Shown: in pieces, positions 29,809 through 64,000 of the stretch | How the letters are laid out: each line of letters begins with the position of its first letter | Numbering within the stretch: the first letter of the stretch is position 1 | Virus record (IMG/VR): IMGVR_UViG_3300042545_001134 | Coordinates: 246,692-310,691 of that record | DNA: 64,000 nt | Reading direction: 5' to 3' (one strand) | Notes under the pieces: model-generated | What the model saw: only the letters and a program-made list of their open reading frames with translations | Database searches by the model: none | What the model was told of the DNA's origin: nothing | Program-made: the position numbers and the translations under genes

Positions 29809-31539
29809 TTATCTTAATGTGTCAAGACTGAATGTAGCCAATCCATGTACGTCAATTAAGCCATAGTAACGGTTATTAACCATTTTCTTAGCGTATCTTG
29901 TCATAATACCCTTAATTGGGGTAAAGTTGAACGGGTTATACATTGTAGGAGTCAATTGTAAAGGAACGTAAGGTGCGTAAATGTAACCTGCGTCTAACAA
30001 TGATTTTCCTTTGTGACCGATGATTACTTTACCTGCTGGTAAGTAAGGGTCACGGTAAACTTGGTAACGACCAGCTAATGAACCGATTTTCTCGATACCC
30101 ATGTTGTAAGTGTCAGCCTCTGGACCAGCACTTGATACGTGGAAATATTCTAAGTCATCGAATACTGCTGATACTTCAGAAGAAACAACAACCCAGTTAG
30201 CTCCACCACGAAGAGTTGTCTTGTGGATTTGAGCAGAGATTTGGTTGATTTTGGTAACCAAAGTTTGGTTCCAATCTTTCTGAGTGTAACCCATGAAAGG
30301 AGTGTTACCGGTTGCTCCGTATTTCCATTCGTTATAGTCCCACTTAGTTCTCCAAGCGGCACCTTTACGGATGTCACGTAAAATTTCACGGTCAATTTCT
30401 GCCGCAACTTGCTCAGACAATAAAGCTGTTAATTCAGCCTCAGCGTCGATGTTGTGGAATGCAGAAACGTCTTGTGCTAATTCTGGAGACCAGCTAGCTC
30501 TTAGTTTTCTTTCAGTTACAGAAACTGTTACTGACTCAAGGTCGAAAGAAACCTCACCGATTTCTTCTTCGAATTCAAGAGAAGCATAAGTGTTGTAAGA
30601 AACAACTAAGTTAGCAAGTGCTAAGTCGTTAGAACTAAAGTCAGATGCAGAGAAACCATTTGTTGTACTGTAAGATTCGAAATCTACATTTAAGTAAATT
30701 TTACCTTCTTCGTCACAAATGTCATTGTATTTAGCAACACCACTACCTGATTTTTGTCCGTACTCAACGATACCTTTACCATATTTCTGAGTTACAACGT
30801 TAAAGTTTTTAACACCGTTTTGTGCTGTTGTGTTACCAGTAACTGTGATTGCTAATGAAGCTAAAAATTCTTCAGTGTCCATAATGTTACCATTAGCACC
30901 TACCATTTTACCTTCACCTGCTGTAGTGAAACCACTAAGAACAACGATTGCACTTGATACTGAATCTCCACTCAAAGCGGCTGTACTTTCAGATGCAGCA
31001 CCATTACTGAATGTTACGAATGCGAAAGGTGCTGCTGCGATTGCAGTAACTGCTCCTTTAGAATAATCGAACAAACCTGAAGTTGCTGTGTCATCTTCTT
31101 CGTAGAAACGGTCGTACAAGTTAGTACCTGTGTAACCTGAAGTTGGGTTAGTTTGAGACGAAGGGAAACCATAAGGTTGGTTATGGTAACCACCTGAAGT
31201 TCTTTCCTGAATTTTAGGGATAAAGAAGAACAATTTACCAATAGGTAAGTTCATTGCTTGTACCGAAACGATGTCGTTTGCTAATAATTTAGAGAATACA
31301 CGACGGATAATTGGGAAAACTACAGTCTCGAAAGAACCACTAGCATCAGAAACTGCTGCTTCGTTGATTAAGTAAGACGCTTGGTTTTCATACAATTGCG
31401 CGATGTTATCTTTTTTATGGCCTTCAAGGCCTTCTAGGAAACCTAAGTCATCCCATTTTTTGATGGTATCTTCTTTGATAACTCTAAGGTGTTTTAACCC
31501 GATGTTACCTACCATACCTGATTCTAATAATGCTCCCAT
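29809..31539 (-). CDS. gp23: Major capsid protein, T4 gp23-like
   Basis: IVSVQAM, RKLRASWSPELAQD, AEAELTALLSEQVAAEIDREI, YAPYVPL, GIMTRYA. Confidence 0.97.
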   Translation of the reverse strand: MGALLESGMVGNIGLKHLRVIKEDTIKKWDDLGFLEGLEGHKKDNIAQLYENQASYLINEAAVSDASGSFETVVFPIIRRVFSKLLANDIVSVQAMNLPIGKLFFFIPKIQERTSGGYHNQPYGFPSSQTNPTSGYTGTNLYDRFYEEDDTATSGLFDYSKGAVTAIAAAPFAFVTFSNGAASESTAALSGDSVSSAIVVLSGFTTAGEGKMVGANGNIMDTEEFLASLAITVTGNTTAQNGVKNFNVVTQKYGKGIVEYGQKSGSGVAKYNDICDEEGKIYLNVDFESYSTTNGFSASDFSSNDLALANLVVSYNTYASLEFEEEIGEVSFDLESVTVSVTERKLRASWSPELAQDVSAFHNIDAEAELTALLSEQVAAEIDREILRDIRKGAAWRTKWDYNEWKYGATGNTPFMGYTQKDWNQTLVTKINQISAQIHKTTLRGGANWVVVSSEVSAVFDDLEYFHVSSAGPEADTYNMGIEKIGSLAGRYQVYRDPYLPAGKVIIGHKGKSLLDAGYIYAPYVPLQLTPTMYNPFNFTPIKGIMTRYAKKMVNNRYYGLIDVHGLATFSLDTLR

Positions 31540-35003: not shown

Positions 35004-36815
35004 TTATTGTTCGTTTAGTATATCTTTTAATTTATTTTCTATTTCATAAATATTCTGTTGTGCCCTATTCATATCGAATAAATCGGTAAACTCTTCGCTC
35101 TCACCCAACATTCCTAATATTTTACGTTTTTTTGATGATTCCGCTAACGGTTCGGCTCCACCCGATGGAGGTGCCTCCGCCGCTGGCGCTCCACCACCCA
35201 TATCCATTCCACCTGGTTCTCCACCACCTTCCGGTGCATCACCACCCTGTTCTCTTTCTTCCTCAGGAACACCGTACTTAGTATCTACTTCATCAAATAC
35301 ACCTGAACGTTTAATAACATTCTGAGTGTTTGTTAATTCAAATCCCATTGCTCTTTCAAGACGTTGTTGTTGTAAATCAAGTATAACCTCACTATCACTC
35401 ATACCAAGAATATTTTTCTTAGCCCATGTGTGGGATACTGGTAATATACCAACTTGTGATGTGTCAGACGTTGCATCTTTATATAGAACAATTTTTTCTT
35501 TCCACTGCTCAATACGTAATAAGTCTGATTGTGCTGAAGGGTTAGTTAATGATAATGTGAAATTATCCAACTCATCCTCCAATCCAAGAAGATACAAATG
35601 CATAAGTGCAATTTTGTTTAATTCTTGAATCATAGACTTTTGAATTCTATTGATGGTTCTAGCGAAACGGATATCCATTAACGCTAAAGTTTTACCGTCA
35701 CCAACCACCTCTTCAAAACCTAAGAATGCCTTAGGTATACGAAGTGCCGCCAACATTTTCTTTTGGATGTATTCAATATCCGCAATCTCACCTAAGTTTT
35801 GTGCTCCCGGTAGAGTTTCAATTGGATTAGTTTGTGCCGCATCACGTACAGGAATGAAATAATCTTGGTCAACAGCCATTTGGTTATATCTCATATCCAC
35901 TTGACCATTTCTACTGTCAACTATTTGGTCCCTTTTAAATTTGTTCGCCACACGTTGCACATACGCCTCGATATCTTTATCATCCATGTTACCAACGAAT
36001 ACTTTGAATACACGTCTTTCGGGTGCTCTTGTTGTTCTATAAATTAACATCGCATCTTCGGCAAGAAGTAATTGTTTCCAAATTCTTCTAATCTTATCCA
36101 ACATTGATGTACCATATGGTAACTTTCTATCGTCACCCAGTAATCTAAAGTGGGCAATTTCCCATGCTTGGAATTCTAAATCTTTATTTTTCCATTGGAA
36201 CCTTAATTCTCTCGATGGCATCTTAGAATCATTTTGGTTAGGTGCTTTAGTTGAGCCACCCTCCATTCTTTCAATCTCAATATTCGGTAATTGTTGACAA
36301 CCAACAATACCTTTTTCGGGGTCAATTTTTAAATAAACAAAATCATCACCGTACTTACACACACCACGAGCCCACATTTGTAGGTTAGTGTTCAAATCTA
36401 AACGATTAATGAATAAGTCCTCAAGTATGGTTTTAATTCTTGAAGATTCTGAAAATATAGTAAGAATTTCACCTTTTTCTGATAATGTAGTAGATTCTTC
36501 TGCATAGATGTCTAATGCCGCCGAAATCTCAGGAGTAAACTCCATTGATTCATAATCATAATACGCCGACATTCTATTTGGTTCATAATAAACCGATTGG
36601 TTATATAATGATTGTTCAAGTTTTGTCCACTTGTCAGCAACGTATTGACTCTGTTGAGCCTGTAACATCGCCTTTTCGTATTCTTCCCTACTATTGGTTT
36701 TTAGTATTTCTTCTCTCGAGAAATTAAATGACGGTGAATCCTCGGGTTTTACTTGTCCCGGGAAACCAAACATCTTGGTTAACCTCTGAAATACAGTTAT
36801 GTTATTATCTGCCAT
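35004..36815 (-). CDS. gp20: Portal protein, T4 gp20-like
   Basis: PEISAALDIYAEE, EDAMLIYR..RAPERRVF.V.VGN, DYFIPVR, IETLPGAQNLGEIADIEY. Confidence 0.96.
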   Translation of the reverse strand: MADNNITVFQRLTKMFGFPGQVKPEDSPSFNFSREEILKTNSREEYEKAMLQAQQSQYVADKWTKLEQSLYNQSVYYEPNRMSAYYDYESMEFTPEISAALDIYAEESTTLSEKGEILTIFSESSRIKTILEDLFINRLDLNTNLQMWARGVCKYGDDFVYLKIDPEKGIVGCQQLPNIEIERMEGGSTKAPNQNDSKMPSRELRFQWKNKDLEFQAWEIAHFRLLGDDRKLPYGTSMLDKIRRIWKQLLLAEDAMLIYRTTRAPERRVFKVFVGNMDDKDIEAYVQRVANKFKRDQIVDSRNGQVDMRYNQMAVDQDYFIPVRDAAQTNPIETLPGAQNLGEIADIEYIQKKMLAALRIPKAFLGFEEVVGDGKTLALMDIRFARTINRIQKSMIQELNKIALMHLYLLGLEDELDNFTLSLTNPSAQSDLLRIEQWKEKIVLYKDATSDTSQVGILPVSHTWAKKNILGMSDSEVILDLQQQRLERAMGFELTNTQNVIKRSGVFDEVDTKYGVPEEEREQGGDAPEGGGEPGGMDMGGGAPAAEAPPSGGAEPLAESSKKRKILGMLGESEEFTDLFDMNRAQQNIYEIENKLKDILNEQ

Positions 36816-45489: not shown

Positions 45490-45586
45490 ACAAGGAAATC
45501 TTTGCCGAAATCCTTTCGTTTTTTAGTCCGTGGGGTTGAACCCACAAAAATGACCTTAAGCCCCGATTCCCGTCGGGGCTTTTTTT
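45490..45586 (+). ncRNA. Putative ~100-nt small RNA
   Basis: TATTTAT at 45479-45485, two hairpins, then terminator AAGCCCCGA-TTCCCG-TCGGGGCTT-U tract; no credible ORF. Confidence 0.45.
45558..45586 (+). terminator. Intrinsic terminator
   Basis: 9-bp GC-rich stem plus U7. Confidence 0.85.
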
Positions 45587-45615
45587 ATTCCGTAATTTTT
45601 CGTATATTTGTAACT

Positions 45616-53808: not shown

Positions 53809-55716
53809 TTAGAGTTTTATAAATTGTTTTGTTAATTGGTTATTTTGATTGTTTAATACTAAATAGTAGTGACCCGTACTTGATGATGTCATGTCAATTT
53901 GTTTGTATCCCACTGTGGAACCTTGACCTGAAATTTCACCAATGTGTTTCACCAATCTACCTTGCATATCATAAATACTACCATTTAACTTAATATTCGG
54001 GTCGGGGAAAAGAACCTCAATCTCAAACCATCCTGTTACTGGATTTGGTCTAATAAGTGCGCTAATTTCTTTAAATTCACCGGGTAAAGTGGTTGGTGAC
54101 ATTTTATAGAAAAGTGTGGTCACTTGACTTGCTAAGTTTATTTCCAAATGGTCACCGTTATTATCAGATGCATCCATTAATTTTCTCACATAAATGTTTG
54201 TACTAACATCAACATTACCAATTGGACTAAATTTTATTTTAAATGGAGTGTGTGAACCAACCAATCCGTCTTTTTGTTGGTTGTTCATACCACCGAATCT
54301 GATGGTTCCCGCGGCCTCATCATGAGTTAAGTATTGTAACCAAGGACCACCATTAAAGTTGGAAACTATTTCATCAAATTTAACCTTTGTTTTATCGTAC
54401 TTCATCTCAAACTGTAAACCGTAGTTTTGGTCACCATTTGTGTTGATGTTAAATGGAACATACATTGGTTGTCCAAGTGATGATGTATTAGGAATTTCAA
54501 CATCTAATTTACCTTTATAAACCGCCTTAGCAACTAATACACCTGAACTGTTATAAACAGGAGATGAATAAGTTCTATCAACGTCACCTAATACAAAGTA
54601 CTTAATATCGATGTTAGTTAAGTTAGTGGTACCAATACTATCCACAACATAATTGTATGCGGTTGAGTGGTTTGTCCATTCTGTCCATTGGTTAGCGCCT
54701 AACACTAATGAATCAAATACATTTCTGTGGAATGCGTGAATCATTGTGGTTGTGTCAATCTTTTTAAGACCACTTATGTTTGCGTAAATCAAATAAGGGT
54801 CACCACCATCGATTTTACCGTTTTTGTTAACATCACCAATCAAATACGCCAAACCATGTTTCAAGTAGTTTTGTGATGGTGTTTGACTAACATCGGTAAC
54901 CGAATATTCATCATATGTTTTAACCGCATCAGATATAGTAACACCATAATCTCTAATAGTAGTCATACTATCTGCTGGGAATCTTACTGTTAATTTATAT
55001 TTTGTATTTTTATCTACGTTGTTAAGAGAGTAAAGACCTGCAGTATCCACTTGTTGTGAAGATACAAATTCACCTGTGTTAAATTTAGTACAAATGATTG
55101 TAGGTCTCATTCCAACACCTACCATAGTAGGTGGTAACCATACTTTACCACTAATAACCAAGTTACCCAAAAGTTCAAGATGCATATCCTGTACGTTCAA
55201 GGTCGCAATGTTATCACCAATTGTGGTACCATCAAATTTGAACATACGAGCCCAGTTAATTTCAAGACTATCCGCGTTGAAGTTTGATGTAACATCATTT
55301 ATGATAAATTTGTTATGTATTAAGAAAGTATCCGCAGTAATCTGAGAACCACTTGATAATACTAAGTAATTTCTGGCAACAGTGTAGTTAGTATCGGTTG
55401 CATATGTGTACGAACTTGTACTTGAGTTGTAACCCGAATACTTGTAGTCATTAAAGAACTTAATAGACAACGAAGGGGTCATACTACTAACGGTAGCGTC
55501 AACAGTTGTTGATACGTGAGTAAAAAGTTGTTTTCTATATTGAAAATCAACTTGGAAGGTTCTTATGTCCACAGATGACGATGCGTCATATTTGAACACC
55601 ACATCTAATGTGTCTCCTCTTTTAATGGTTTTATAGGCAACTGGGTTACCTATACCTTGTGCAAATGCCGACGATGATGTAATTAATACAACAAGGGCTA
55701 AAATTAGTTTTTTCAT
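53809..55716 (-). CDS. T9SS-tagged scaffold protein: cohesin-like, Ig-like, dockerin-like, cohesin-like, T9SS type A CTD
   Basis: Signal peptide; GDTLDV...FQVDFQY; GDVNKNGKIDGGD; VPF.I.....YGLQFEMKYD..KVKF; IRPNP...IYDMQGRLV...GHYYLVL...TKQFIKL. Confidence 0.8.
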   Translation of the reverse strand: MKKLILALVVLITSSSAFAQGIGNPVAYKTIKRGDTLDVVFKYDASSSVDIRTFQVDFQYRKQLFTHVSTTVDATVSSMTPSLSIKFFNDYKYSGYNSSTSSYTYATDTNYTVARNYLVLSSGSQITADTFLIHNKFIINDVTSNFNADSLEINWARMFKFDGTTIGDNIATLNVQDMHLELLGNLVISGKVWLPPTMVGVGMRPTIICTKFNTGEFVSSQQVDTAGLYSLNNVDKNTKYKLTVRFPADSMTTIRDYGVTISDAVKTYDEYSVTDVSQTPSQNYLKHGLAYLIGDVNKNGKIDGGDPYLIYANISGLKKIDTTTMIHAFHRNVFDSLVLGANQWTEWTNHSTAYNYVVDSIGTTNLTNIDIKYFVLGDVDRTYSSPVYNSSGVLVAKAVYKGKLDVEIPNTSSLGQPMYVPFNINTNGDQNYGLQFEMKYDKTKVKFDEIVSNFNGGPWLQYLTHDEAAGTIRFGGMNNQQKDGLVGSHTPFKIKFSPIGNVDVSTNIYVRKLMDASDNNGDHLEINLASQVTTLFYKMSPTTLPGEFKEISALIRPNPVTGWFEIEVLFPDPNIKLNGSIYDMQGRLVKHIGEISGQGSTVGYKQIDMTSSSTGHYYLVLNNQNNQLTKQFIKL

Positions 55717-56213
55717 AGTAGTTTATCGAGTAAGTTTATTGTTGTTTTCTTTATTGCAGAACTTGCGGATTCTTGATTGAATTTACCTCCCTCATCAATA
55801 ATGATTGTTGAAGTTGATATTTCAGTCGATTTACCTTCCGCAAATTCAGTTTTAATTTTTTTATCTCCTTTATAGAGAACACCCTTCATTCTAATGACGG
55901 TGGTACTTTTATCTTGGTGAAATACAGCAATTCCTGATTTAGTATTGACGATATCAAAGAATATTAATTCAACCTGTATTGAGTATTCGGCCTTTTCTTT
56001 TACCCCAATCAAGACCAAACTATCTTGTTCATTTATTATTTCTTGAACAATGTTTTTTACTCCAAACGCCAAATTTTTGTTACCAACAAGAGTACCAACA
56101 CGGATGTTGTTAATCACGGGTTCAACAAAAATAGTCGGTCCTGTCTGAGCAGTTACGCTCAAAAAGGGACATAGGAATAGCACAGAAAAAATTATACTTT
56201 TGATAAGTCTCAT
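55713..56213 (-). CDS. Secreted protein (possible CsgG/TolB-N-like alpha-beta fold)
   Basis: Signal peptide; GVKNIVQE and FNQES.S.AIKK echo the 255-aa CsgG-like protein. Confidence 0.55.
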   Translation of the reverse strand: MRLIKSIIFSVLFLCPFLSVTAQTGPTIFVEPVINNIRVGTLVGNKNLAFGVKNIVQEIINEQDSLVLIGVKEKAEYSIQVELIFFDIVNTKSGIAVFHQDKSTTVIRMKGVLYKGDKKIKTEFAEGKSTEISTSTIIIDEGGKFNQESASSAIKKTTINLLDKLL

Positions 56214-56237
56214 GGTTAAACAGTGGAATAAATTAGA

Positions 56238-56498
56238 TTATTCAGAGATTTCGTCTTCCGATTTTTTATTCTTGTTGTTAATCCACTTATCGACAGATGC
56301 GATACCGAATGAACCTAACGTGATTACTAAAAATCCGTCAAAGATAAATTCGTTAATTAGTAATTCTTTACCCATCCAACCTGTAATAAGGTCAACGAAT
56401 AGAGAGATTACCATCATGAGAAACGCGATGAATCCCACTACTGATTTCTCGTTAATTGTGTTGTTATCGTTAAATAACTGGCTGAAAAATTTTTTCAT
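56238..56498 (-). CDS. Small two-TM membrane protein
   Basis: Two hydrophobic helices; first gene of the operon. Confidence 0.7.
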   Translation of the reverse strand: MKKFFSQLFNDNNTINEKSVVGFIAFLMMVISLFVDLITGWMGKELLINEFIFDGFLVITLGSFGIASVDKWINNKNKKSEDEISE

Positions 56499-56632
56499 AG
56501 TTGTAGTTTGTGTTTGTTTTTATGTTTGGTTATCAATAAATATCCCGGCAAAGTGTTAAGGAAAAAAAATTCGAGAAAATCAAGTCTAAAAAAATTTTAT
56601 ATCTTTTTTGATACTTTTCTTTGTTTTTTGCA

Positions 56633-56650
56633 TACTTATTGTTATCTTTG
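56633..56650 (+). promoter_or_regulatory. Promoter elements for tRNA array 1 (TACTTAT and TATCTTTG)
   Basis: Late-like TAYTTAT at 56633-56639 and Bacteroidota TAnnTTTG at 56643-56650. Confidence 0.6.
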
Positions 56651-56681
56651 TAAAAGATTTAAAAACTAAATAAAAAATTCA

Positions 56682-56771
56682 ATGACACGCAACACACATA
56701 CAATGTCGTTTACTATCTGTTCGAAATGGGCGGAAGTGATTGATATTGCCATGTCTCGAGGTGTCTTGTAA
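56682..56771 (+). CDS. Putative attenuator leader peptide 1 (29 aa, MTRNTHTMSFTICSKWAEVIDIAMSRGVL)
   Basis: ATG after an A-rich tract; contains TCTCGAGGT (56754-56762), the exact complement of the terminator 5' arm. Confidence 0.7.
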   Translation: MTRNTHTMSFTICSKWAEVIDIAMSRGVL

Positions 56772-56800
56772 GTTGTTTAGTTTTAAAACGATATTAAAGG

Positions 56801-56830
56801 AACCTCGAGAGAAATCTCGGGGTTTTTTTT
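56801..56830 (+). terminator. Intrinsic terminator/attenuator upstream of tRNA array 1
   Basis: AACCTCGAGA-GAAA-TCTCGGGGTT plus U tract, ending 6 nt before tRNA-Ala. Confidence 0.88.
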
Positions 56831-56836
56831 GTTTTA

Positions 56837-56909
56837 GGGCTGTTGGTATAGTTGGCTAACACACGACATTTGCACTGTCGAATCCCCGGTTCGAAGCCGG
56901 GACGGTCCA
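56837..56909 (+). tRNA. tRNA-Ala(TGC)
   Basis: Cloverleaf, CGACA-TT TGC AC-TGTCG, G3:U70. Confidence 0.93.
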
Positions 56910-56940
56910 CAAAGTGTTCTTTGACATATTGGTTTAATTT

Positions 56941-57013
56941 GGTACCGTAGCTCAGTTGGTAGAGCGTCGCCCTGAAGAGGCGAGCGTCACTGGTTCGAAT
57001 CCGGTCGGTACCA
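56941..57013 (+). tRNA. tRNA-Phe(GAA)
   Basis: TCGCC-CT GAA GA-GGCGA. Confidence 0.93.
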
Positions 57014-57018
57014 CATTT

Positions 57019-57092
57019 GTCTCCGTAGCTCAGTTGGTTAGAGCACCTCACTTTTAATGAGGGAGTCACGCGTTCGAGTCGCGTCGGGGACA
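57019..57092 (+). tRNA. tRNA-Lys(TTT)
   Basis: CCTCA-CT TTT AA-TGAGG. Confidence 0.93.
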
Positions 57093-57094
57093 CA

Positions 57095-57229
57095 AAGGTT
57101 GATTGGGGAATGATTATGTCGATAGTTCGAGAGTGAATACTGACTGACATAATCGGAGTTTGGAGGTGTTCACCTAAGTAATGCCAATCATAAAAGTAGA
57201 TGTCCACTGAACCATCTTCTACTTTCCTT
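57095..57229 (+). ncRNA. Unassigned structured RNA A
   Basis: Helices TGATTGG/CCAATCA, GATTATGTC/GACATAATC, AAAGTAGA/TCTACTTT. Confidence 0.6.
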
Positions 57230-57234
57230 TATTT

Positions 57235-57307
57235 AGTTCCGTAGCTCAGTTGGGAGAGCATCTGCCTTACATGCAGAGGGTCACTGGTTCGAACCCAGTC
57301 GGAACTA
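57235..57307 (+). tRNA. tRNA-Val(TAC)
   Basis: TCTGC-CT TAC AT-GCAGA. Confidence 0.93.
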
Positions 57308-57316
57308 CAAATACAC

Positions 57317-57388
57317 ATGGGTGTGGTGCAATGGTTAGCATAAGAGTCTCCAAAACTTTTGATGGGAGTTCGAGTCTCTCCACCCGTG
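57317..57388 (+). tRNA. tRNA-Trp(CCA)
   Basis: AGAGT-CT CCA AA-ACTTT. Confidence 0.9.
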
Positions 57389-57409
57389 CAAACTTTAAAA
57401 ACAAATAAC

Positions 57410-57838
57410 ATGGAAAGAGATGACAACATCGATGCCGTCAAAATGAGATTTGAGGCGGAGAAAATGAAATTAAGGGAAGAAAGGGAAAAAACAATTAAAC
57501 AGTATTGGGAAAATTTACCAAAACTTAATAATCCTGAAGATGTACCAACACTCCCAAGAGTTGATGAAAAACAATGGAGGGAGTTTTATGTCCCAAAATT
57601 AATCGAAGCGGGAGCAATCCCAAAAAATGATTTAATTCATGGTCAAATTTATATTGGTGAACATAGAAACACAACCATCGCAAGATGGAATCAAGAAACA
57701 GATAAATTTGTACACATGAGATATAAGTTTGGTTGGAGAGAAGATGAATGTAATCACTTTGAGGATGATAATGGATTTGCGTTGTTTGTACCAATTAGAT
57801 TGGGTACACAAGAAGAATGGGATGAAAGAATTAAATAA
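57410..57838 (+). CDS. Hypothetical protein within the tRNA array
   Basis: Start re-assigned to ATG 57410 because the track start lies inside tRNA-Trp. Confidence 0.75.
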   Translation: MERDDNIDAVKMRFEAEKMKLREEREKTIKQYWENLPKLNNPEDVPTLPRVDEKQWREFYVPKLIEAGAIPKNDLIHGQIYIGEHRNTTIARWNQETDKFVHMRYKFGWREDECNHFEDDNGFALFVPIRLGTQEEWDERIK

Positions 57839-57845
57839 TTAAGTT

Positions 57846-57919
57846 ACTCTCGTAGTTCAATGGATTAGAACATTTCACTACGGATGAAAGGGTTGGGAGT
57901 TCGAGTCTCTCCGAGAGTA
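57846..57919 (+). tRNA. tRNA-Arg(ACG)
   Basis: TTTCA-CT ACG GA-TGAAA. Confidence 0.92.
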
Positions 57920-57925
57920 CGATAA

Positions 57926-57995
57926 GGTCAGTTTGGTCGTGGAGGCCGGTTAGTCTGCAAAATTAACGGAGTTGGTTCGATTCCAACATTGACCT
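57926..57995 (+). tRNA. tRNA-Cys(GCA)
   Basis: TTAGT-CT GCA AA-ATTAA, U73, short D-loop. Confidence 0.85.
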
Positions 57996-58001
57996 CAATA
58001 T

Positions 58002-58079
58002 GGTGGATATAGTTCAGTTGGTTAGAACGTCTGATTGTGGTTCAGAAGGTCGCCGGTTCGAATCCGGTTATTCACCCCA
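58002..58079 (+). tRNA. tRNA-His(GTG) with G-1 and encoded CCA
   Basis: TCTGA-TT GTG GT-TCAGA; G-1:C73. Confidence 0.93.
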
Positions 58080-58082
58080 TAT

Positions 58083-58156
58083 TGGAATATAACTCAGTTG
58101 GTTAGAGTGTCATCCTGATACGGTGAAAGTCGGTGGTTCGAGTCCACCTATTCCAA
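58083..58156 (+). tRNA. tRNA-Ile(GAT)
   Basis: TCATC-CT GAT AC-GGTGA. Confidence 0.92.
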
Positions 58157-58163
58157 CAAACAT

Positions 58164-58237
58164 TGCGGGGTGGTCTGGAGAGGTTCCAGCTCGGTCTCAT
58201 AAGCCGAATCACGTGGGTTCGATTCCCACTCCCGCAA
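58164..58237 (+). tRNA. tRNA-Met(CAT)
   Basis: TCGGT-CT CAT AA-GCCGA; initiator-like acceptor TGCGGGG; atypical D arm. Confidence 0.85.
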
Positions 58238-58301
58238 CTTTTTAAAAACATTTTGAAGTGTGACTTTTATTATGTATATTTGAAATGTTCTTTGATTTAA
58301 T

Positions 58302-58378
58302 GCCTCCTTAGCTCAGTTGGCCGGAGCGCCTCACTTGTAATGAGGATGTCGGCGGTTCGAATCCGTCAGGAGGCTCCA
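58302..58378 (+). tRNA. tRNA-Thr(TGT) with encoded CCA
   Basis: CCTCA-CT TGT AA-TGAGG. Confidence 0.93.
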
Positions 58379-58380
58379 TT

Positions 58381-58453
58381 GGTCCCGTGGTTGAATGGTT
58401 ACAATTCCACCCTGTCACGGTGCGAGGTACGGGTTCGAATCCCGTCGGGACCG
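58381..58453 (+). tRNA. tRNA-Asp(GTC)
   Basis: CACC-CT GTC AC-GGTG, G73. Confidence 0.92.
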
Positions 58454-58455
58454 CG

Positions 58456-58660
58456 TTGAGTAAGAGATACTCACTAAGTTTGGTAACGTTCTTTCAAGAT
58501 GTTATAGTTGTCGCCTTCCACAACTTTAAAGAGGAGGTCGTCGGAGTATGGTCGTAACAAAACCACCGAGTATGTTTGACGTTTATGTGCGGGTAAGACC
58601 GTCTCGTGTTTTCAATACGAAAACAGAAGAAAAATCTACTCATTGGAATCTCAGGTGGGA
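58456..58660 (+). ncRNA. Unassigned structured RNA B
   Basis: Hairpins TGAGTA/TACTCA, TAACGTT/GATGTTA, AGTTGT/ACAACT, TGTTTTC/GAAAACA; GC-richer than flanks; no ORF. Confidence 0.5.
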
Positions 58661-58665
58661 AAATT

Positions 58666-58751
58666 GGAAGGATGGCAGAGTTGGTCTATCGCATCGGTCT
58701 TGAAAACCGAAGTACTGAAAGGTACCGTGGGTTCGAATCCTACTCCTTCCG
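58666..58751 (+). tRNA. tRNA-Ser(TGA)
   Basis: TCGGT-CT TGA AA-ACCGA, long variable arm. Confidence 0.93.
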
Positions 58752-58797
58752 CAAACGATTGTTGTTCTTTGACAAATTAAAAACAAAATTAAAAGAT

Positions 58798-59088
58798 ATG
58801 GATACATTATCATTTATTTTAGGAATGTCCTCGGTGGTGGTTATCGCAATTGCGGTAGTTGCTGTTAAAGGATTTTTTAAGGTCAGAAATGTTGAGAAAC
58901 ACTTCAATGAATACAAACAAAACTTTACAGTTGAGTTTGATAATAGAACAAAAGATATTCATGATAGTATGAATCGTGTGAATGATGAATTACATCGTAG
59001 AATTGATAACACAGAAAGAGAAGTCTTTTCCCAATTAGACTCTCGATTAGATAAATTGGAAACTAAGTTAACGAGCCGTAAGGCATAA
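58798..59088 (+). CDS. Single-TM coiled-coil protein
   Basis: Start re-assigned to ATG 58798 (MDTLSFILG...). Confidence 0.75.
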   Translation: MDTLSFILGMSSVVVIAIAVVAVKGFFKVRNVEKHFNEYKQNFTVEFDNRTKDIHDSMNRVNDELHRRIDNTEREVFSQLDSRLDKLETKLTSRKA

Positions 59089-59122
59089 TAAATAAATCGT
59101 TAAAGACAACAATCGTTTATAT

Positions 59123-59194
59123 GGCCCTTTCGACTATCGGTTAGGTCGTCAGGTTTTCATCCTGAAAAGTCGGGTTCGATTCCCGGAGGGGCTA
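59123..59194 (+). tRNA. tRNA-Glu(TTC)
   Basis: TCAGG-TT TTC AT-CCTGA. Confidence 0.92.
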
Positions 59195-59217
59195 CAATGG
59201 AATTAAATTAAACCAAT

Positions 59218-59457
59218 ATGTTAGAAAGAATATTAGGAATTTACGAAGATGAAGGATTACTTATCGCTGATGGATTCGATGATGCAGTAATTGGAATTGA
59301 TGAATCGTCAATGAGAGTAATCTATTCGGTTGCCAAATGTCTCCACATTTTAGAACGTGATATGGAGATGATTGATGCGATTGAATACTTTGAATTTAAC
59401 GTAAAAGGCGCATACGTTGGAGACAAGACTCCGATATGGTGTGAAGATTTTTTTTAA
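59218..59457 (+). CDS. Conserved phage hypothetical protein
   Basis: ADGFDDAVIG...EYFEFNV.GAYVG..TP motif seen in many phages. Confidence 0.8.
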   Translation: MLERILGIYEDEGLLIADGFDDAVIGIDESSMRVIYSVAKCLHILERDMEMIDAIEYFEFNVKGAYVGDKTPIWCEDFF

Positions 59458-59459
59458 TT

Positions 59460-59669
59460 ATGATTAATTATTTAGGTTACTTCGCAACATTCTTAACTCT
59501 ACTTTCTTTTTCTTTTAAAAATATTACAAAATTAAGAATTGTTAGTTCAACGTCATGTGTGTTTTGGATTGTTTATGGGTGTTTAAAAAATGATTATCCA
59601 ATCATCAGCACAAATGTTTTAATAATCATAATACATGTGTACTACCTACTAAAAACAAAAAATAAATAA
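59460..59669 (+). CDS. YgjV/PQ-loop-like small membrane protein
   Basis: LGY.AT...L.SF......KLR......FWIVYG.....P.I.TN. Confidence 0.7.
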   Translation: MINYLGYFATFLTLLSFSFKNITKLRIVSSTSCVFWIVYGCLKNDYPIISTNVLIIIIHVYYLLKTKNK

Positions 59670-59676
59670 ACTTTTG

Positions 59677-59695
59677 TATATTTGTATATACTTAT
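59677..59695 (+). promoter_or_regulatory. Promoter elements for tRNA array 2 (TATATTTG and TACTTAT)
   Basis: TAnnTTTG at 59677-59684, TAYTTAT at 59689-59695. Confidence 0.6.
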
Positions 59696-59702
59696 TAAAA
59701 CA

Positions 59703-59801
59703 ATGATGAACTTGGATAACATACAACAACTGTCTAACAACCCGATAAGTGGTAATGGGAGAGGTACGTATTTATGTCACCCAAGTTCGGAATCCAAATG
59801 A
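59703..59801 (+). CDS. Putative attenuator leader peptide 2 (32 aa, MMNLDNIQQLSNNPISGNGRGTYLCHPSSESK)
   Basis: Same layout as leader 1; GTTCGG (59785-59790) is complementary to CCGAAC in the terminator 5' arm. Confidence 0.65.
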   Translation: MMNLDNIQQLSNNPISGNGRGTYLCHPSSESK

Positions 59802-59830
59802 ATGTAAGAATTTTAAACTCTATACTCACG

Positions 59831-59872
59831 AGACCCGAACATCCCAAAAAGATTTTCGGGTTTTTTGTTTTT
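59831..59872 (+). terminator. Intrinsic terminator/attenuator upstream of tRNA array 2
   Basis: ACCCGAA-C-ATC-loop-GAT-T-TTCGGGT plus U tract. Confidence 0.82.
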
Positions 59873-59929
59873 AGAGATATTCTTTTGTATATTTGTGATG
59901 TAGTTCTTTGACATGTTGGTGAAAAAAAT

Positions 59930-60014
59930 GCTGAGGTGATGGAATGGTAGACATGACAGACTTAAAATCTGTTGAGTAGTAATGCTCGTGTGGGTTCGAC
60001 TCCCATCCTCAGTA
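59930..60014 (+). tRNA. tRNA-Leu(TAA)
   Basis: ACAGA-CT TAA AA-TCTGT, long variable arm. Confidence 0.93.
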
Positions 60015-60015
60015 C

Positions 60016-60218
60016 AAAAAACAATACCTTACATAAGACGGATTAGCACCGTTGAAAGGAACCTTGGCTTCAATCGGAGTAATTACCGTAACCGAAGTAA
60101 TAATGACCCAAGGTACTATGTGATGGACCCTGCTCTATGGTGCACTCATAACAGGTGAACAGTAAACTATGTTCAATCAAATTCAAAACCACGGTGAGCG
60201 TGGAAGGTATTGTTTTTT
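60016..60218 (+). ncRNA. Unassigned structured RNA C (multibranch, ~200 nt)
   Basis: Perfect 15-bp closing helix AAAAAACAATACCTT/AAGGTATTGTTTTTT enclosing five helices. Confidence 0.7.
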
Positions 60219-60225
60219 ATTTAAC

Positions 60226-60300
60226 GCACCCGTAGCTCAGCTGGATTAGAGCAACTGCCTTCTAAGCAGTAGGTCACAGGTTCGAATCCTGTCGGGTGTA
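60226..60300 (+). tRNA. tRNA-Arg(TCT)
   Basis: ACTGC-CT TCT AA-GCAGT. Confidence 0.93.
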
Positions 60301-60341
60301 CAAATGGAGTCCTTTACTTTATCCTTTTATATTCATATAAT

Positions 60342-60986
60342 ATGGAAAAAAGTATGAGATATAAAAAAAAATTAAACAGTGAGTGTAAATGGTGTGGGGA
60401 AACCTTTAATGTAGAAGATAAACCAAAAGGTTTCATGGCAAATCATAGTAGATGGTGTGTAAAAAACCCAAATAAAAATGATTACATGAAAACTCTATCA
60501 AAAAATAGAAAATCAATTACCGAAGAATCCAGAAAATTGGCAGGAAAATCGATATCGAAAGCATGGGAAAACGGTTCGTATTCTCATGTTAAGTTTAATA
60601 GCTTCCAAGGAAGAACACACACCGAAGAAGCGAAAGAAAAAATAAGAAGAGCACAACTATTATTAAATTACCGAAGACTTAGAAAACATCAAGTAATGTA
60701 TAAAGATGTGTTATTAGATAGTAGTTGGGAATTAGCGTTAGCAATCCGTTTAGATGAATTAAACATAAAATGGATACGACCTGAACGCATTATGTGGATT
60801 GATAAAAATAATTTAAAACGTTCATATTATCCTGATTTTTATTTAAACGATTATGATATGTATTTGGACCCAAAAAATCCAGCGGCATATCAAAATCAAA
60901 TTGAAAAAATTGAAATTTTAAAAAACACAATTCCAAATTTAAAGTTCATTTTAAGTTTGAAAGAATGTAAGGAGTTTAACATATAG
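60342..60986 (+). CDS. Free-standing homing-endonuclease-like protein (Zn finger, NUMOD3, PD-(D/E)xK)
   Basis: CKWC...H..WC; GRTHTEEAKEKIR; DSSWE...YYPDFYL......DPK. Confidence 0.8.
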   Translation: MEKSMRYKKKLNSECKWCGETFNVEDKPKGFMANHSRWCVKNPNKNDYMKTLSKNRKSITEESRKLAGKSISKAWENGSYSHVKFNSFQGRTHTEEAKEKIRRAQLLLNYRRLRKHQVMYKDVLLDSSWELALAIRLDELNIKWIRPERIMWIDKNNLKRSYYPDFYLNDYDMYLDPKNPAAYQNQIEKIEILKNTIPNLKFILSLKECKEFNI

Positions 60987-61058
60987 GGAATTAGCGTAGT
61001 TCGGTATCGCGCTTGGTTTGGGACCAAGAGGTCGTCAGTTCGAATCTGGCATTCCCTA
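60985..61058 (+). tRNA. tRNA-Pro(TGG)
   Basis: CTTGG-TT TGG GA-CCAAG. Confidence 0.92.
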
Positions 61059-61063
61059 CAAAT

Positions 61064-61137
61064 TCCTCGATAGCTCAGTCGGTTAGAGCATTTGACTGTT
61101 AATCAAAGGGTCCCAAGTTCGAGTCTTGGTCGGGGAG
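61064..61137 (+). tRNA. tRNA-Asn(GTT)
   Basis: TTTGA-CT GTT AA-TCAAA. Confidence 0.93.
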
Positions 61138-61146
61138 CAAATAAAT

Positions 61147-61220
61147 ACCTTCGTAGGAGAACTGGTATATCCACTGCACTTAGGATGCAGATTTTGTGGG
61201 TTCGAATCCCACCGAAGGTA
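61147..61220 (+). tRNA. tRNA with TAG (Leu) anticodon and short variable loop
   Basis: CTGCA-CT TAG GA-TGCAG; 5-nt variable loop; A73. Confidence 0.85.
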
Positions 61221-61225
61221 CAAAT

Positions 61226-61353
61226 AGTCAGGTGGCGGAAAGATTACGGCGCTGGGATAAAAACTGGGGCCTTGATAATCGTGGTAGACGCCCTGTTTCT
61301 AGACGATGGCCGAAAGCAAGATTTCGGTACAGGTTCAAATCCTGTCCTGACTA
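61226..61353 (+). ncRNA. tRNA-like RNA with D-loop insertion and irregular anticodon arm
   Basis: Acceptor AGTCAGG/CCTGACT, T arm ACAGG-TTCAAAT-CCTGT, split GCGGAA...TGGTAGACGC D arm. Confidence 0.75.
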
Positions 61354-61363
61354 CAAACATTAT

Positions 61364-61445
61364 TGGAAGGTGGGTGAGTGGTTAAAACCGACAGACTGTA
61401 AATCTGTTCCCATTGGGTACGGGGGTTCAAATCCCTCCCTTCCAA
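61364..61445 (+). tRNA. tRNA-Tyr(GTA)
   Basis: ACAGA-CT GTA AA-TCTGT, long variable arm. Confidence 0.93.
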
Positions 61446-61461
61446 CTTAAAAATTATTATT

Positions 61462-62037
61462 ATGGCAAGAAGTAAAATTTTATCTGACTTATTAAAATCC
61501 ATAACTCCTGAAATGGAAGAAAAGTGGAAACAGGAAAGAATGAATTATAAAAAAAGTTTAAGTATCGAATATCAATTGGGGTATTATGTTGGGTTGGAAA
61601 TTGTACATCGTTACTTACCAACACTATCAACTGATATGATTCAATCGAATTATGTAATTGAGGTATCTCAGATGGATTCTGAGGAGAACAAACGATTAGA
61701 AGTGGAATGGTTCACAACCACCAAACACGGTGGAGAATGGGATGGTAAAAGTGATAACGGTAATAAAGAAAGATGGGATGATTTATTTGACCACAATAAA
61801 ATGTTGGAGGTAAAATATCTACCACATACTTTAACATGTCACATGGATGTTTTGAACATCAACGACATGAAACAATTTAAAGAGGGAATAAGAACAAGTC
61901 TATGGGATTGTGATATGTGTTCATATAATATCGATATCGAAAACATAAAAATTTATGACGATGAGGATATTAGATTTACAATTATTGAATTCACATTGGA
62001 TTCATTAAATGATACTAAAACAGATGAAGAGATTTAA
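61462..62037 (+). CDS. Hypothetical protein
   Basis: 191 aa ORF. Confidence 0.7.
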   Translation: MARSKILSDLLKSITPEMEEKWKQERMNYKKSLSIEYQLGYYVGLEIVHRYLPTLSTDMIQSNYVIEVSQMDSEENKRLEVEWFTTTKHGGEWDGKSDNGNKERWDDLFDHNKMLEVKYLPHTLTCHMDVLNINDMKQFKEGIRTSLWDCDMCSYNIDIENIKIYDDEDIRFTIIEFTLDSLNDTKTDEEI

Positions 62038-62713
62038 GATTATATCAGTAGTGGTGGTAACACTAACAATTTTATTTGCGTCACTCATGTTAATTTCAAG
62101 TCAATCCTTGAAAAGTGTGAAGGTAAAAAAAGATGTGGTTAAATCACCGTCTTTAAATGTGGATACGGTTGTTGATGTGAATGGTAAACATGTTTTGTTT
62201 ATTGGTGATTCTCACACCGCAAATCATGACTTTGGTTGGCAAGTTATTCTGTGTCAGAAAACGGGGATGAAAATGAATAACACCGCAGTTATAGGTAAAC
62301 ACTTACCATGGATGGTATCTGTCGCAAGACAAACAATTTCACCCTATTATGATTATTGTTTTATCTACGGTGGTGCAAATGATATCCATGGAAATCGAAA
62401 TCCATATTCTGTTGTTAAAGACGTTCAGAAGATTGTTGAGATGTGCACAATGAATGGGGTTGAGGCAATTGTTCTTACAGGGTTTAATGCAGAAGAATGT
62501 GTTAGACCGTTAAAAGGACAAGAATTTTATCCAAAGGCGTACACTCGTTATCAAAAAATATTGATGGATAGTATCGTAGATGCAACTGTTGTTGATACAA
62601 GAGTGGTGGTGAGAACGGATTGCGGTGATTGGACTTGTCACATGCACCCAACGGGACATAGAAAAGTGGCAAACGCAGTTATTAAACAAATGAACTTTAA
62701 AACAAAAAACTGA
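62024..62713 (+). CDS. SGNH/GDSL hydrolase with N-terminal membrane anchor
   Basis: FIGDSHT, GGAND, D..CH...GH. Confidence 0.85.
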   Translation: MKRFKIISVVVVTLTILFASLMLISSQSLKSVKVKKDVVKSPSLNVDTVVDVNGKHVLFIGDSHTANHDFGWQVILCQKTGMKMNNTAVIGKHLPWMVSVARQTISPYYDYCFIYGGANDIHGNRNPYSVVKDVQKIVEMCTMNGVEAIVLTGFNAEECVRPLKGQEFYPKAYTRYQKILMDSIVDATVVDTRVVVRTDCGDWTCHMHPTGHRKVANAVIKQMNFKTKN

Positions 62714-63318
62714 TGACAAAATATACCTTAGTAATCGGTGGTTGGGAGTTGAACGCTTCCGGTCATCAACTCACAAACGAAGAAGTTGTAAAACTTAGAA
62801 ACCACATGTCTGAAAATGGTATCGATGATTTAAGTTCAATGGGATTTGACATTGAAGAAGTTTTAAATTATGATATATTCGATGCGAATATGTGGGTGAT
62901 GGATAAACCTCTTTGGAATGGTACACCACACTTCATGGTATTCAAATCGGATGACATGGAAAATAGAGTTCTTGAATTCGAAGAAAAAGAAATGTCTGAC
63001 CATTATGAAGTAGATGAAGATGCAGATTACGGTGACACATTTAACGGATTTCCAATTGAAGGTGAGGAGGAAAATATCATCCTTTGGTTAGAAGAAAATA
63101 AAGGATGGGTATGTGACTTTGAATTTGAGTCTGATGAAATTCCAACTGCAAAAGATTTCAGTATGGTTGGTGGTTGTATTGAAACACCTAACGGAGATTG
63201 GGACTTTATTGATAAAATGTACTTCAAGGGTAAAGAACTTCAGATGGACTTTAACCACCAAGAAACTCGAGGTAAGGCATTAACAATAGAACTTTGGACA
63301 TTAGAAAACACCAAATAA
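62713..63318 (+). CDS. Acidic hypothetical protein
   Basis: 201 aa ORF. Confidence 0.7.
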   Translation: MTKYTLVIGGWELNASGHQLTNEEVVKLRNHMSENGIDDLSSMGFDIEEVLNYDIFDANMWVMDKPLWNGTPHFMVFKSDDMENRVLEFEEKEMSDHYEVDEDADYGDTFNGFPIEGEEENIILWLEENKGWVCDFEFESDEIPTAKDFSMVGGCIETPNGDWDFIDKMYFKGKELQMDFNHQETRGKALTIELWTLENTK

Positions 63319-63319
63319 A

Positions 63320-63535
63320 ATGAACGAAAATTTAGATAACAACTTAAAATCAATTATTGCTGAAAAAATTGAAAACTCCGGATTTTATAAACTTCAAGGA
63401 GTAGCCCCTGACGGATTCAAATTATTACCAATTGAGGTAATCGAAGATTTGAAAGAATTTGAAAATTGGAAAGAGTTCAAACACAACGAACAATGGCTTG
63501 ACGCTCAGTCAAAAATCTATATGAAAGACAAATAA
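63320..63535 (+). CDS. Hypothetical protein
   Basis: 71 aa ORF. Confidence 0.65.
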   Translation: MNENLDNNLKSIIAEKIENSGFYKLQGVAPDGFKLLPIEVIEDLKEFENWKEFKHNEQWLDAQSKIYMKDK

Positions 63536-63598
63536 TTAAAAATATTTGTTTATTTAAAAAAATGATTGTATCTTTGTATTACTAAAAGAAATAAAGAT

Positions 63599-63856
63599 AT
63601 GCCAAAATTTAGCACCTACGTAGATGTTGATATCCATGAATTTATGGGAGAATGTAGCAAAAGAGAAATTAAAGAACTTATTGATTATTTGGTTCAAGAT
63701 GGACACATTAATTCAAGTTCAATCATCGTCCCAAGTAAGAAAAACTCATTGATGGAAATTGAACACATCGAAACATGTAATAAATTATCATCAGTTTATC
63801 TTAGAATGAATCGTGAAGACTGGGAGTTAATAAAACAAATCGCATCGAAATATTAA
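63599..63856 (+). CDS. Hypothetical protein
   Basis: ATG 63599 downstream of TATCTTTG (63569-63576). Confidence 0.65.
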   Translation: MPKFSTYVDVDIHEFMGECSKREIKELIDYLVQDGHINSSSIIVPSKKNSLMEIEHIETCNKLSSVYLRMNREDWELIKQIASKY

Positions 63857-63868
63857 TCATAATTAAAT

Positions 63869-63940
63869 TGGGCATTAGCTCAGCGGTAGAGCTCTCGACT
63901 GTTAATCGAGTGGTCCTAGGTTCAAATCCTAGATGCCCAG
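63869..63940 (+). tRNA. tRNA-Asn(GTT), second divergent copy
   Basis: CTCGA-CT GTT AA-TCGAG, G73. Confidence 0.92.
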
Positions 63941-63948
63941 CAATATAT

Positions 63949-64000
63949 TGCGATATTGGTGTAAGGTCGGTCTCATGAGCCGAGTTGGTAGATATACCCC
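63949..64000 (+). tRNA. Partial CAT-anticodon tRNA-like element (cut by the window end)
   Basis: TCGGT-CT CAT GA-GCCGA arm; D arm unclear; T arm not visible. Confidence 0.35.

Follow-up and report, generated by a model that had tools for sequence, protein, structure and literature searches.

In the classical attenuators of E. coli, trpL and the leaders of the his, leu, thr, ilv and pheA systems, a short open reading frame (ORF) is located upstream of the regulated genes, the leader RNA contains the helices 1:2, 2:3 and 3:4 and an intrinsic terminator, and the stop codon is placed such that a terminating ribosome masks segment 2. Codon-specific stalling of the ribosome also controls a component of the decoding machinery in E. 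coli, namely pheST, which is preceded by the pheM leader. In T-box riboswitches, a terminator/antiterminator switch in the leader reports the status of a transfer RNA (tRNA), and here uncharged tRNA is bound directly and no ORF is needed. The purpose and the expression of the large tRNA sets encoded by phages are debated, and the main proposals are that these tRNAs compensate for codon usage, substitute for a host pool that decays, or allow the phage to evade defences directed at tRNAs. To our knowledge, no leader-peptide attenuator has been described for the tRNA cluster of phage T4. Here, a stretch of 64,000 nucleotides (nt) from the IMG/VR virus record IMGVR_UViG_3300042545_001134 (positions 246,692 to 310,691, in the following referred to as the window) was analysed, in which two arrays of tRNA genes are each preceded by a short leader, designated leader 1 and leader 2. 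The analysis focuses on leader 2 (59677-59872), which, with a probability of about 0.55, is a trp-type ribosome-mediated attenuator located in front of array 2, with codons matching the downstream tRNAs.

All parts of the two leaders and all tRNA genes are encoded on the + strand, and their coordinates refer to the window. Leader 2 begins with the -7 box of a promoter of the Bacteroidota TAnnTTTG type, TATATTTG (P1, 59677-59684), which is followed by a leader ORF of 32 codons and a TGA stop codon (59703-59801). Segment 1, GAACTTGG (59708-59715, codons 2-5), forms the 5' strand of an anti-antiterminator helix 1:2. Its partner, CCAAGTTC (59781-59788, codons 27-29), belongs to segment 2, CCAAGTTCGG (59781-59790); within segment 2, the 5' part is the partner of segment 1 and the 3' part, GTTCGG (59785-59790), that of segment 3. 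The latter is the 5' arm of the terminator (59832-59840) and holds the sequence CCGAAC (59835-59840), while segment 4 (59855-59872) consists of the 3' arm TTCGGGT and the T-tract. The terminator stem spans 59832-59862, with a T6 tract at 59861-59866, and was calculated to have about -12.6 to -14.4 kcal/mol in the window. Since segment 2 takes part in both 1:2 and 2:3, and CCGAAC is also part of the terminator, the helices 1:2, 2:3 and 3:4 are mutually exclusive. Downstream of the terminator, a second promoter, P2, was identified with the same -7 box TATATTTG at 59888-59895, followed by the six genes of tRNA array 2 (59930-61446), which start at 59930 (Leu-TAA), 60226 (Arg-TCT), 60985 (Pro-TGG), 61064 (Asn-GTT), 61147 (Leu-TAG) and 61364 (Tyr-GTA). 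A first-pass annotation of the window had already listed the promoter, the ORF, the complementary hexamers, the terminator, the second TAnnTTTG and the six tRNA genes, and all of these were found within 0-2 nt. It had also cautioned that the antiterminator comprises only about 6-8 base pairs (bp), which is correct in that GTTCGG:CCGAAC is a short helix of 6 bp, but helix 1:2 had been overlooked.

Leader 2 thereby contains the short ORF, the intrinsic terminator, the antiterminator sharing a strand with it and the 1:2 helix overlapping the ORF which are known from leader-peptide attenuators. However, a cluster of regulatory codons for one amino acid was not found, and no run of a single class is present in leader 2. 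Instead of one run of regulatory codons, as in the trpL type, it contains one to four codons for each of about ten classes. Further differences from the trpL type are that the targets are tRNA genes rather than biosynthetic enzymes, that the element is located in a phage, that the antiterminator has just 6 bp, that a second promoter is present past the terminator, and that no leader family of Rfam is matched. Compared to pheM, the common feature is that stalling on a leader peptide would govern a component of decoding; there, one amino acid is sensed and a synthetase is controlled, whereas leader 2 would respond to many classes and its products are tRNAs. A T-box was not identified in leader 2, neither as an Rfam match nor as a specifier or T-box motif, and a cmscan search of 55000-64000 with E-values up to 1 assigned neither 59690-59872 nor 56660-56830, the region of leader 1, to a T-box or another leader family. 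Likewise, Rfam 15 contains no family matching leader 1 or leader 2, and the literature search yielded no description of tRNA genes or phage tRNA arrays controlled by leader-peptide attenuation. What is new in comparison to the classical attenuators is the mixed-codon leader, the tRNA genes as targets and the viral nature of the element.

In the proposed mechanism, transcription from P1 or from further upstream would produce a leader RNA in which segment 1 pairs with segment 2, so that the ORF forms a fold-back structure. In the absence of translation, or when a ribosome proceeds smoothly to the stop codon, which lies 2-14 nt beyond segment 2, this segment would be unavailable, helix 3:4 would form and transcription would stop. 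A ribosome stalled earlier in the ORF would open 1:2, by which 2:3 could pair, the terminator would not form, and RNA polymerase would read through into the tRNA genes. Because almost all codons at which a stall would be sensed are decoded by downstream tRNAs, a shortage of one of these tRNAs would raise its own transcription. Transcription of array 2 in response to tRNA shortage would represent a negative feedback on decoding capacity, with tRNA availability as the presumed signal. The attenuator would be located between the upstream promoter, together with the transcription unit of array 1, and array 2, while P2 probably provides a basal, attenuation-independent expression of array 2. The arrangement of P1 and P2 resembles, by analogy only, the tandem promoters of rRNA operons, where a stable-RNA operon has a regulated entry point upstream and a further promoter downstream of it; in leader 2, however, regulation would occur by attenuation between the promoters and not at initiation. 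The components of this reading are not equally strong. That leader 2 is a structured and translated leader of the attenuator kind is regarded as likely, and for codon sampling proper the chances are estimated as slightly less than even.

Relatives of the locus were collected by a search with the neighbouring gene for a 79-residue protein and then with a conserved DNA pattern, in IMG/VR and in metagenome contigs. By this, the leader-2 element was identified in 14 distinguishable lineages with 70-93% identity. The sequences recovered by the pattern are biased at its two blocks, but the first, unbiased set was already invariant at these positions. In the metagenome scan the matches were mostly due to chance; among the matches listed, a terminator was present at 13 of 120 loci, which added three lineages. 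A pattern scan of viral contigs for leader 1 was unspecific, with at least 117 chance matches, and was discarded. Among the 80 loci sharing the gene for the 79-residue protein, leader 2 is restricted to those with tRNA genes downstream. In the window itself, no further copies of leader 1 or leader 2 are present.

In all 14 lineages the ATG of leader 2 is kept and its reading frame is open; no stop codon interrupts it, compared to totals of 54 and 38 for the two alternative frames. The stop codon is located 2, 8, 11 or 14 nt past GTTCGG and 24-41 nt ahead of the terminator arm. Most relatives end the ORF at a TAA equivalent to 59805-59807, and the length ranges from 32 to 34 codons. The peptide is well conserved, with the motif NPLSGNGRG.YLC.PSSE, but the variable sites of the ORF (9, 8 and 13 in the first, second and third codon position) are not concentrated at third positions. 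Synonymous sites in AGTGGTAATGGGAGAGGT, in TATTTA and in the TCG codon of segment 2 are invariant, whereas adjacent conserved codons vary synonymously. Some of the indels fall into trinucleotide repeats. Since the frame is maintained and the synonymous core sites are invariant, both the ORF and the RNA of leader 2 are under constraint, and the ORF is presumably translated.

A consensus fold of 12 lineages obtained with RNAalifold showed the ORF folded onto itself by GAACTTGG:CCAAGTTC and several inner helices, followed by the terminator. In this fold, 96.7% of the structure cells are paired, compared to at most 48% when the partners are slid by 1-3 columns, and six pairs are altered on both sides, a number reached by none of 500 shuffles. 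In helix 1:2 of the lineages L096 and L109, a compensatory swap of T-A to A-T was identified, which couples Leu4Met with Ser28Cys, and G-U wobbles are present in other lineages. The terminator is predicted at -12.6 to -17.7 kcal/mol across the lineages, and every pair of its stem is either conserved or a wobble. For the 2:3 pairing, calculated with the 3' arm withheld, probabilities of 0.5-1.0 were obtained in nine of the 12 lineages and of 0.01-0.3 in three. The spacing between GTTCGG and CCGAAC is kept at 41-46 nt despite a diverged spacer sequence; the hexamer GTTCGG is invariant, and the 2:3 partners display no discriminating covariation. The conserved pairings are consistent with helices that would switch termination.

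Conserved and covarying secondary structure could also point to a structured non-coding small RNA with its own terminator, similar to the small stable RNAs of the T4 tRNA cluster, in which the ORF would be incidental. The strong conservation of synonymous sites is in line with such an RNA, as is the location in a tRNA cluster, beside the structured freshwater-1 RNA described below, and indels of 3 nt in trinucleotide repeats need no coding reason. This explanation is nevertheless considered to be very unlikely. The ATG and the open frame are retained in each of the 14 lineages, even in the L094/L111 clade with its rewritten N-terminal half, the stop codons differ yet stay within a narrow, mechanistically meaningful zone, and leader 1 behaves alike.

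For the codon content of leader 2, codons were grouped into 24 decoding classes by the anticodons seen, and random windows from 38 phage genes (15,060 codons) served as background. The sensing zone was defined as codons 2-24, where a stalled ribosome does not yet cover GTTCGG. When the zone is compared only with the six tRNA classes present in the window, the match is modest, with 11 of 23 codons (P 0.02) and six of six classes (P 0.017). When it is compared with the full downstream set known from relatives, 19 of the 23 codons match, with 8.9 expected and none of 100,000 random windows reaching this value, and all ten downstream classes are covered (P about 1e-4). In the consensus of the leader-2 family, 20-21 of the 23 codons belong to the downstream set. 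This suggests that the leader codons mostly match the tRNAs that follow, by which the phage would adjust its tRNA supply to the decoding demand.

The codons cited in the first-pass annotation, TTG, TTA, CTG, AGA, CCG, four AAC and one AAT, and TAT, are indeed all present within codons 1-24. Its statement that Ala, Phe, Val and Trp codons are lacking holds true for the window (P about 0.01), but not for the family, in which Val is present at codon 5 in most relatives and Phe in some. A proposed split of the serine codons, with TCG in leader 1 and AGT in leader 2, was not confirmed, as leader 2 contains AGT twice and in addition three TCN codons (TCT, TCG and TCC). It had further been proposed that the two leaders partition the genetic code between the arrays. 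An enrichment was identified in both leaders, but 11 of the 32 codons of leader 2 belong to classes of array 1 (whole ORF, P 0.007), so that the partition is statistically real but leaky.

An attenuator of the same architecture might respond to another signal, for example to ribosome availability or coupling, to a single amino acid sensed by Asn-Asn or Gln-Gln, or to a ligand or host factor acting through nascent-peptide arrest. The AAC-AAC and CAA-CAA tandems are conserved in leader 2, and Asn accounts for five of its 32 codons. Moreover, the conservation of the peptide core resembles that of arrest peptides, and the leader remains unaltered where arrays shrink. Such a signal is regarded as quite unlikely in view of the codon content: no run of one class is present, all ten downstream classes are represented in the zone, as are all 14 complementary classes in leader 1. 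In addition, the conserved core lies within predicted helices and is under constraint as a nucleotide sequence, and a signal at the peptide level is disfavoured because the sequence blocks common to both leaders, if homologous, are read in different frames.

The codon-sampling attenuator predicts that tRNAs for the remaining leader codons are encoded further downstream. IMG/VR contains contigs identical to the window, one of them with 310,691 bp, and the end of the window is the exact end of this contig, so that nothing beyond 64000 can be read there. When a protein encoded inside array 2 of the relatives was used as query for the continuation, none of the 80 loci obtained belonged to this phage. 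In relatives with enough sequence, tRNA-Tyr is followed by a homolog of the ORF at 61462-62037 and by genes for tRNA-Ile-TAT and/or a CAT-anticodon tRNA, Gly-GCC, Gly-TCC, Gln-TTG and Ser-GCT, and between these, neither another leader nor a promoter gap or a terminator was detected. The earlier prediction of tRNAs for Gln, Gly, Ser-GCT and Ile2 downstream was thus borne out in every relative with enough sequence, but it is unreadable in the window, where the contig ends.

In the divergent clade of L018, L111 and L094, genes for Val-TAC and Ser-TGA tRNAs are located downstream of leader 2, and the N-terminal half of the leader has been rewritten. Here, leader 1 contains no Val codon and no TCN codon in its sensing zone, while leader 2 contains Val and additional TCN codons. 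Compared to their own arrays, the leaders of this clade are enriched for matching codons, with P 1.8e-4 to 1.3e-5 for leader 1 and 0.008 for leader 2. Overall, the relation of leader codons to gain and loss of tRNA genes gave a mixed picture, with agreement for Val and Ser-TGA but not for Met, and with no adjustment of the leaders in L110 and in the L093 group.

The sister element, leader 1 (56644-56830), consists of a promoter box, an ORF of 29 codons (56682-56771), an antiterminator strand, TCTCGAGG (56754-56761), located in the last codons of the ORF, and a terminator with its arms at 56803-56810 and 56815-56822 and a T-tract extending to 56830. TCTCGAGG pairs perfectly with the terminator arm CCTCGAGA, and in the minimum free energy fold of the truncated transcript the antiterminator comprises 9-13 bp. 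A compensatory change was found across the lineages, in which T in the ORF strand and A in the arm are replaced by C and G. The ORF of leader 1 also folds into a long hairpin, and its frame is likewise maintained across the lineages. The first gene of array 1 (14 genes, 56837-59195), coding for tRNA-Ala, starts at 56837, 7 nt past the T-tract and with no promoter in between, so that array 1 can be reached only through the terminator of leader 1. Of the 28 codons following the start codon, 25 belong to classes of array 1 (P 7.5e-4), and all 14 array-1 classes are covered, which was the case for none of 100,000 random windows. Leader 1 is the stronger case of the two.

The two leaders had been described as unrelated in sequence, which is too strong a statement. 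Both contain the blocks ACATACAA and AATGGG.GAGGT, which lie in different frames if homologous. In global alignments of leader 1 with leader 2, one pair reached z = 5.9 and others 1.6-3.8, and a weak cross-match was obtained with nhmmer (E 6e-4), in L018 only; the two leaders of the window do not match each other. It is possible that leaders 1 and 2 are distant paralogs, and leader 1 would serve array 1 in the same role with the other codon set. That the phage carries two such codon-sampling attenuators, each with leader codons drawn from precisely those tRNA species that its array encodes, is proposed tentatively, with the odds being rather against it. In that case, the array that matches would be activated whenever one of about 25 decoding classes is in short supply. 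Directly past the leader-1 terminator of L094, at 7204-7273 of that sequence and at the same place in L018, L096 and L105, a degenerate tRNA-Ala(TGC)-like gene is present (29.7 bits), which contains mismatches in the acceptor arm and was missed by ARAGORN.

The promoters of leader 2 were compared to the pattern of the Bacteroidota primary sigma factor, TAnnTTTG with a TTTG about 19-21 nt upstream. The putative promoter P2 contains both elements, since the TTTG at 59864-59867, at the end of the T-tract, doubles as its -33 box, 20 nt ahead of TATATTTG. For P1, a -33 TTTG is absent in the window and present only in relatives, where it is located 18-19 nt upstream of the -7 box. In the window, P1 is preceded by an ORF for a 69-residue SemiSWEET/PQ-loop-like membrane protein (59460-59669 (+), PF03083, E 1.2e-5), which is 99-100% identical in L081 and L086, whereas the flanking DNA is only about 72% identical. 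Because its identity is far above that of the flanking DNA, this ORF behaves as a recently exchanged cassette, and its insertion removed the -33 TTTG of P1 in the lineage of the window. Between P2 and tRNA-Leu, the sequence GTTCTTTGACATGTTGG (59902-59918 (+)) is nearly invariant across most lineages, with a different conserved block in its place in the group of L093, L331 and L386; it may represent a 5' leader of the pre-tRNA or a processing signal.

A terminator directly followed by a promoter is not unique to leader 2. In L037, L038 and L044, a homologous terminator-P2 module without a leader is placed after an ordinary gene for a protein of 140 residues. Elsewhere in the window, a strong terminator (GCCCCGA...TCGGGGC with T7, 45579-45611 (+)) is immediately followed by the promoter motif TTTCGTATATTTGT, and junctions of this kind seem to be in general use in this phage. 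The first-pass annotation had noted that the second TAnnTTTG might permit a bypass of attenuation, and this concern was reinforced by the conservation of P2 and by the module found behind an ordinary gene in L037 and L044, so that a bypass is regarded as likely.

These junctions raise the question of whether leader 2 is simply an independent mini-gene, in which P1 would express a protein of 32-34 residues that ends at an ordinary terminator, the array would be transcribed from P2, and the codon match would be due to coincidence or a composition bias. The conserved P2, the same junction behind an ordinary gene, the terminator with its promoter motif at 45579/45598, the conserved peptide motif and the presence of the leader in the tRNA-poor L093 group are all consistent with this. 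However, the variable sites by codon position, together with the invariant synonymous core, indicate a constraint on the sequence itself and not on the protein. Nor would a mini-gene account for mutually exclusive and covarying helices 1:2, 2:3 and 3:4, for a stop codon always shortly past segment 2, for a leader 1 without a bypass promoter, or for a codon-tRNA match with P below 1e-5. The mini-gene is thus regarded as unlikely. A type I toxin or a precursor of a ribosomally synthesized and post-translationally modified peptide was considered and rejected, the peptide being hydrophilic, with no modifying enzymes encoded nearby.

Several points weigh against an attenuator which samples codons for array 2. 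The 2:3 pairing is its weakest link: the helix has only 6 bp, encloses a loop of about 44 nt and is calculated to be far weaker than the terminator, and in three lineages it is predicted with a low probability of 0.01-0.3. A ribosome stalled further than about codon 10 would not be positioned physically over segment 1. Because P2 is conserved directly after the terminator, array 2 can be transcribed without passing the attenuator, and because the terminator-P2 module follows an ordinary gene in L037, L038 and L044, the predicted P2 is a junction promoter in its own right. With regard to the statistics, the sensing zone was chosen on mechanistic grounds after the fact, the relatives are non-independent samples, and the array-1 codons in leader 2 belong to the same side of the balance. 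The prediction of downstream tRNAs discriminates poorly, because a near-complete tRNA set must place its remaining species somewhere. Among the relatives, those with Val at codon 5 of leader 2, and those with Phe, encode the Val and Phe tRNAs in their array 1. L110 has lost its tRNAs for Phe, Lys and Val, yet its leader 1 is unaltered. In the L093 group the leader is nearly intact, with only Leu-TAA, Arg-TCT, a CAT-anticodon tRNA and Gly-GCC within about 5-10 kilobases.

If codon sampling applies to both leaders, they would form a virus-encoded feedback controller of decoding capacity which operates per codon, and the first leader-peptide attenuator known for tRNA genes. The shortage could be triggered by a mismatch to the codon usage of the host, by host shut-off or by tRNA-cleaving defence nucleases. 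A classical mechanism would thereby provide a new regulatory logic, with tRNA supply regulated on demand during infection, and the element would be of use in synthetic biology as a natural and compact sensor for translation stress at specific codons. Even if codons are not sampled, leader 2 would represent a conserved leader-peptide attenuator ahead of tRNA genes in a phage of Bacteroidota, as judged from its sequence, for which no counterpart was found in Rfam 15 or in the literature search.

The source of the window was assigned from its genes to a T4-like jumbo phage, with a Gp23-type major capsid protein (29809-31539), a portal protein of the T4 type (35004-36815) and a protein with a sorting tail of the type IX secretion system (T9SS, 53809-55716). 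A Bacteroidota host is indicated by the TAnnTTTG promoter boxes together with the T9SS domain. The G+C content is 32-39%, and a promoter 14-mer around the TAnnTTTG box is over-represented in the window, with 13 matches compared to 4.4 expected. A similarity search of the region against isolate phage genomes matched tRNA genes only, and because the matches are confined to these, no close cultured relative is apparent. In total, 21 tRNA genes were identified concordantly by ARAGORN and Rfam, consisting of the two arrays and a second tRNA-Asn at 63869. The last 59 nt of the window were considered as a truncated CAT-anticodon tRNA and rejected, since Rfam gave no call, no homolog is present in relatives and the spacing of the arms does not fit.

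As in T4, the tRNA genes of this T4-like phage are clustered among small ORFs, homing endonucleases and small structured RNAs, and array 2 is broken up by a freshwater-1 RNA, an endonuclease-like ORF and a tRNA-like element. The freshwater-1 motif (60119-60181 (+), Rfam RF02979, 73.4 bits compared to a gathering score of 72) is located between Leu-TAA and Arg-TCT and looks like an optional insert of the array, since the L008/L086 lineage is without that gap. Between Arg-TCT and Pro, an ORF of 214 residues (60342-60986 (+)) belongs to PHROG endonuclease/Holliday-junction-resolvase families; it is probably a homing endonuclease, because the L006 lineage holds only about 150 nt at that spot. The tRNA-like element (61226-61353 (+), 30.4 bits) has well-formed acceptor, D and T arms as well as a long variable arm, but contains 54 nt in place of a 17-nt anticodon arm and was not called by ARAGORN. 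It is not present in relatives, where Tyr directly follows Leu-TAG, and could represent a class II tRNA that is interrupted or carries an intron. The adjacent TAG-anticodon tRNA (61147-61221 (+)) has only 75 nt and is without the long variable arm that leucine tRNAs of bacteria are expected to have, so that its amino-acid identity may be other than Leu; its version in the L006 lineage has 82 nt. Downstream of array 2 in the relatives L232 (about 7859) and L233 (about 8630), a tRNA with a CTA anticodon was identified, which is of the amber-suppressor type and was labelled Pyl by ARAGORN.

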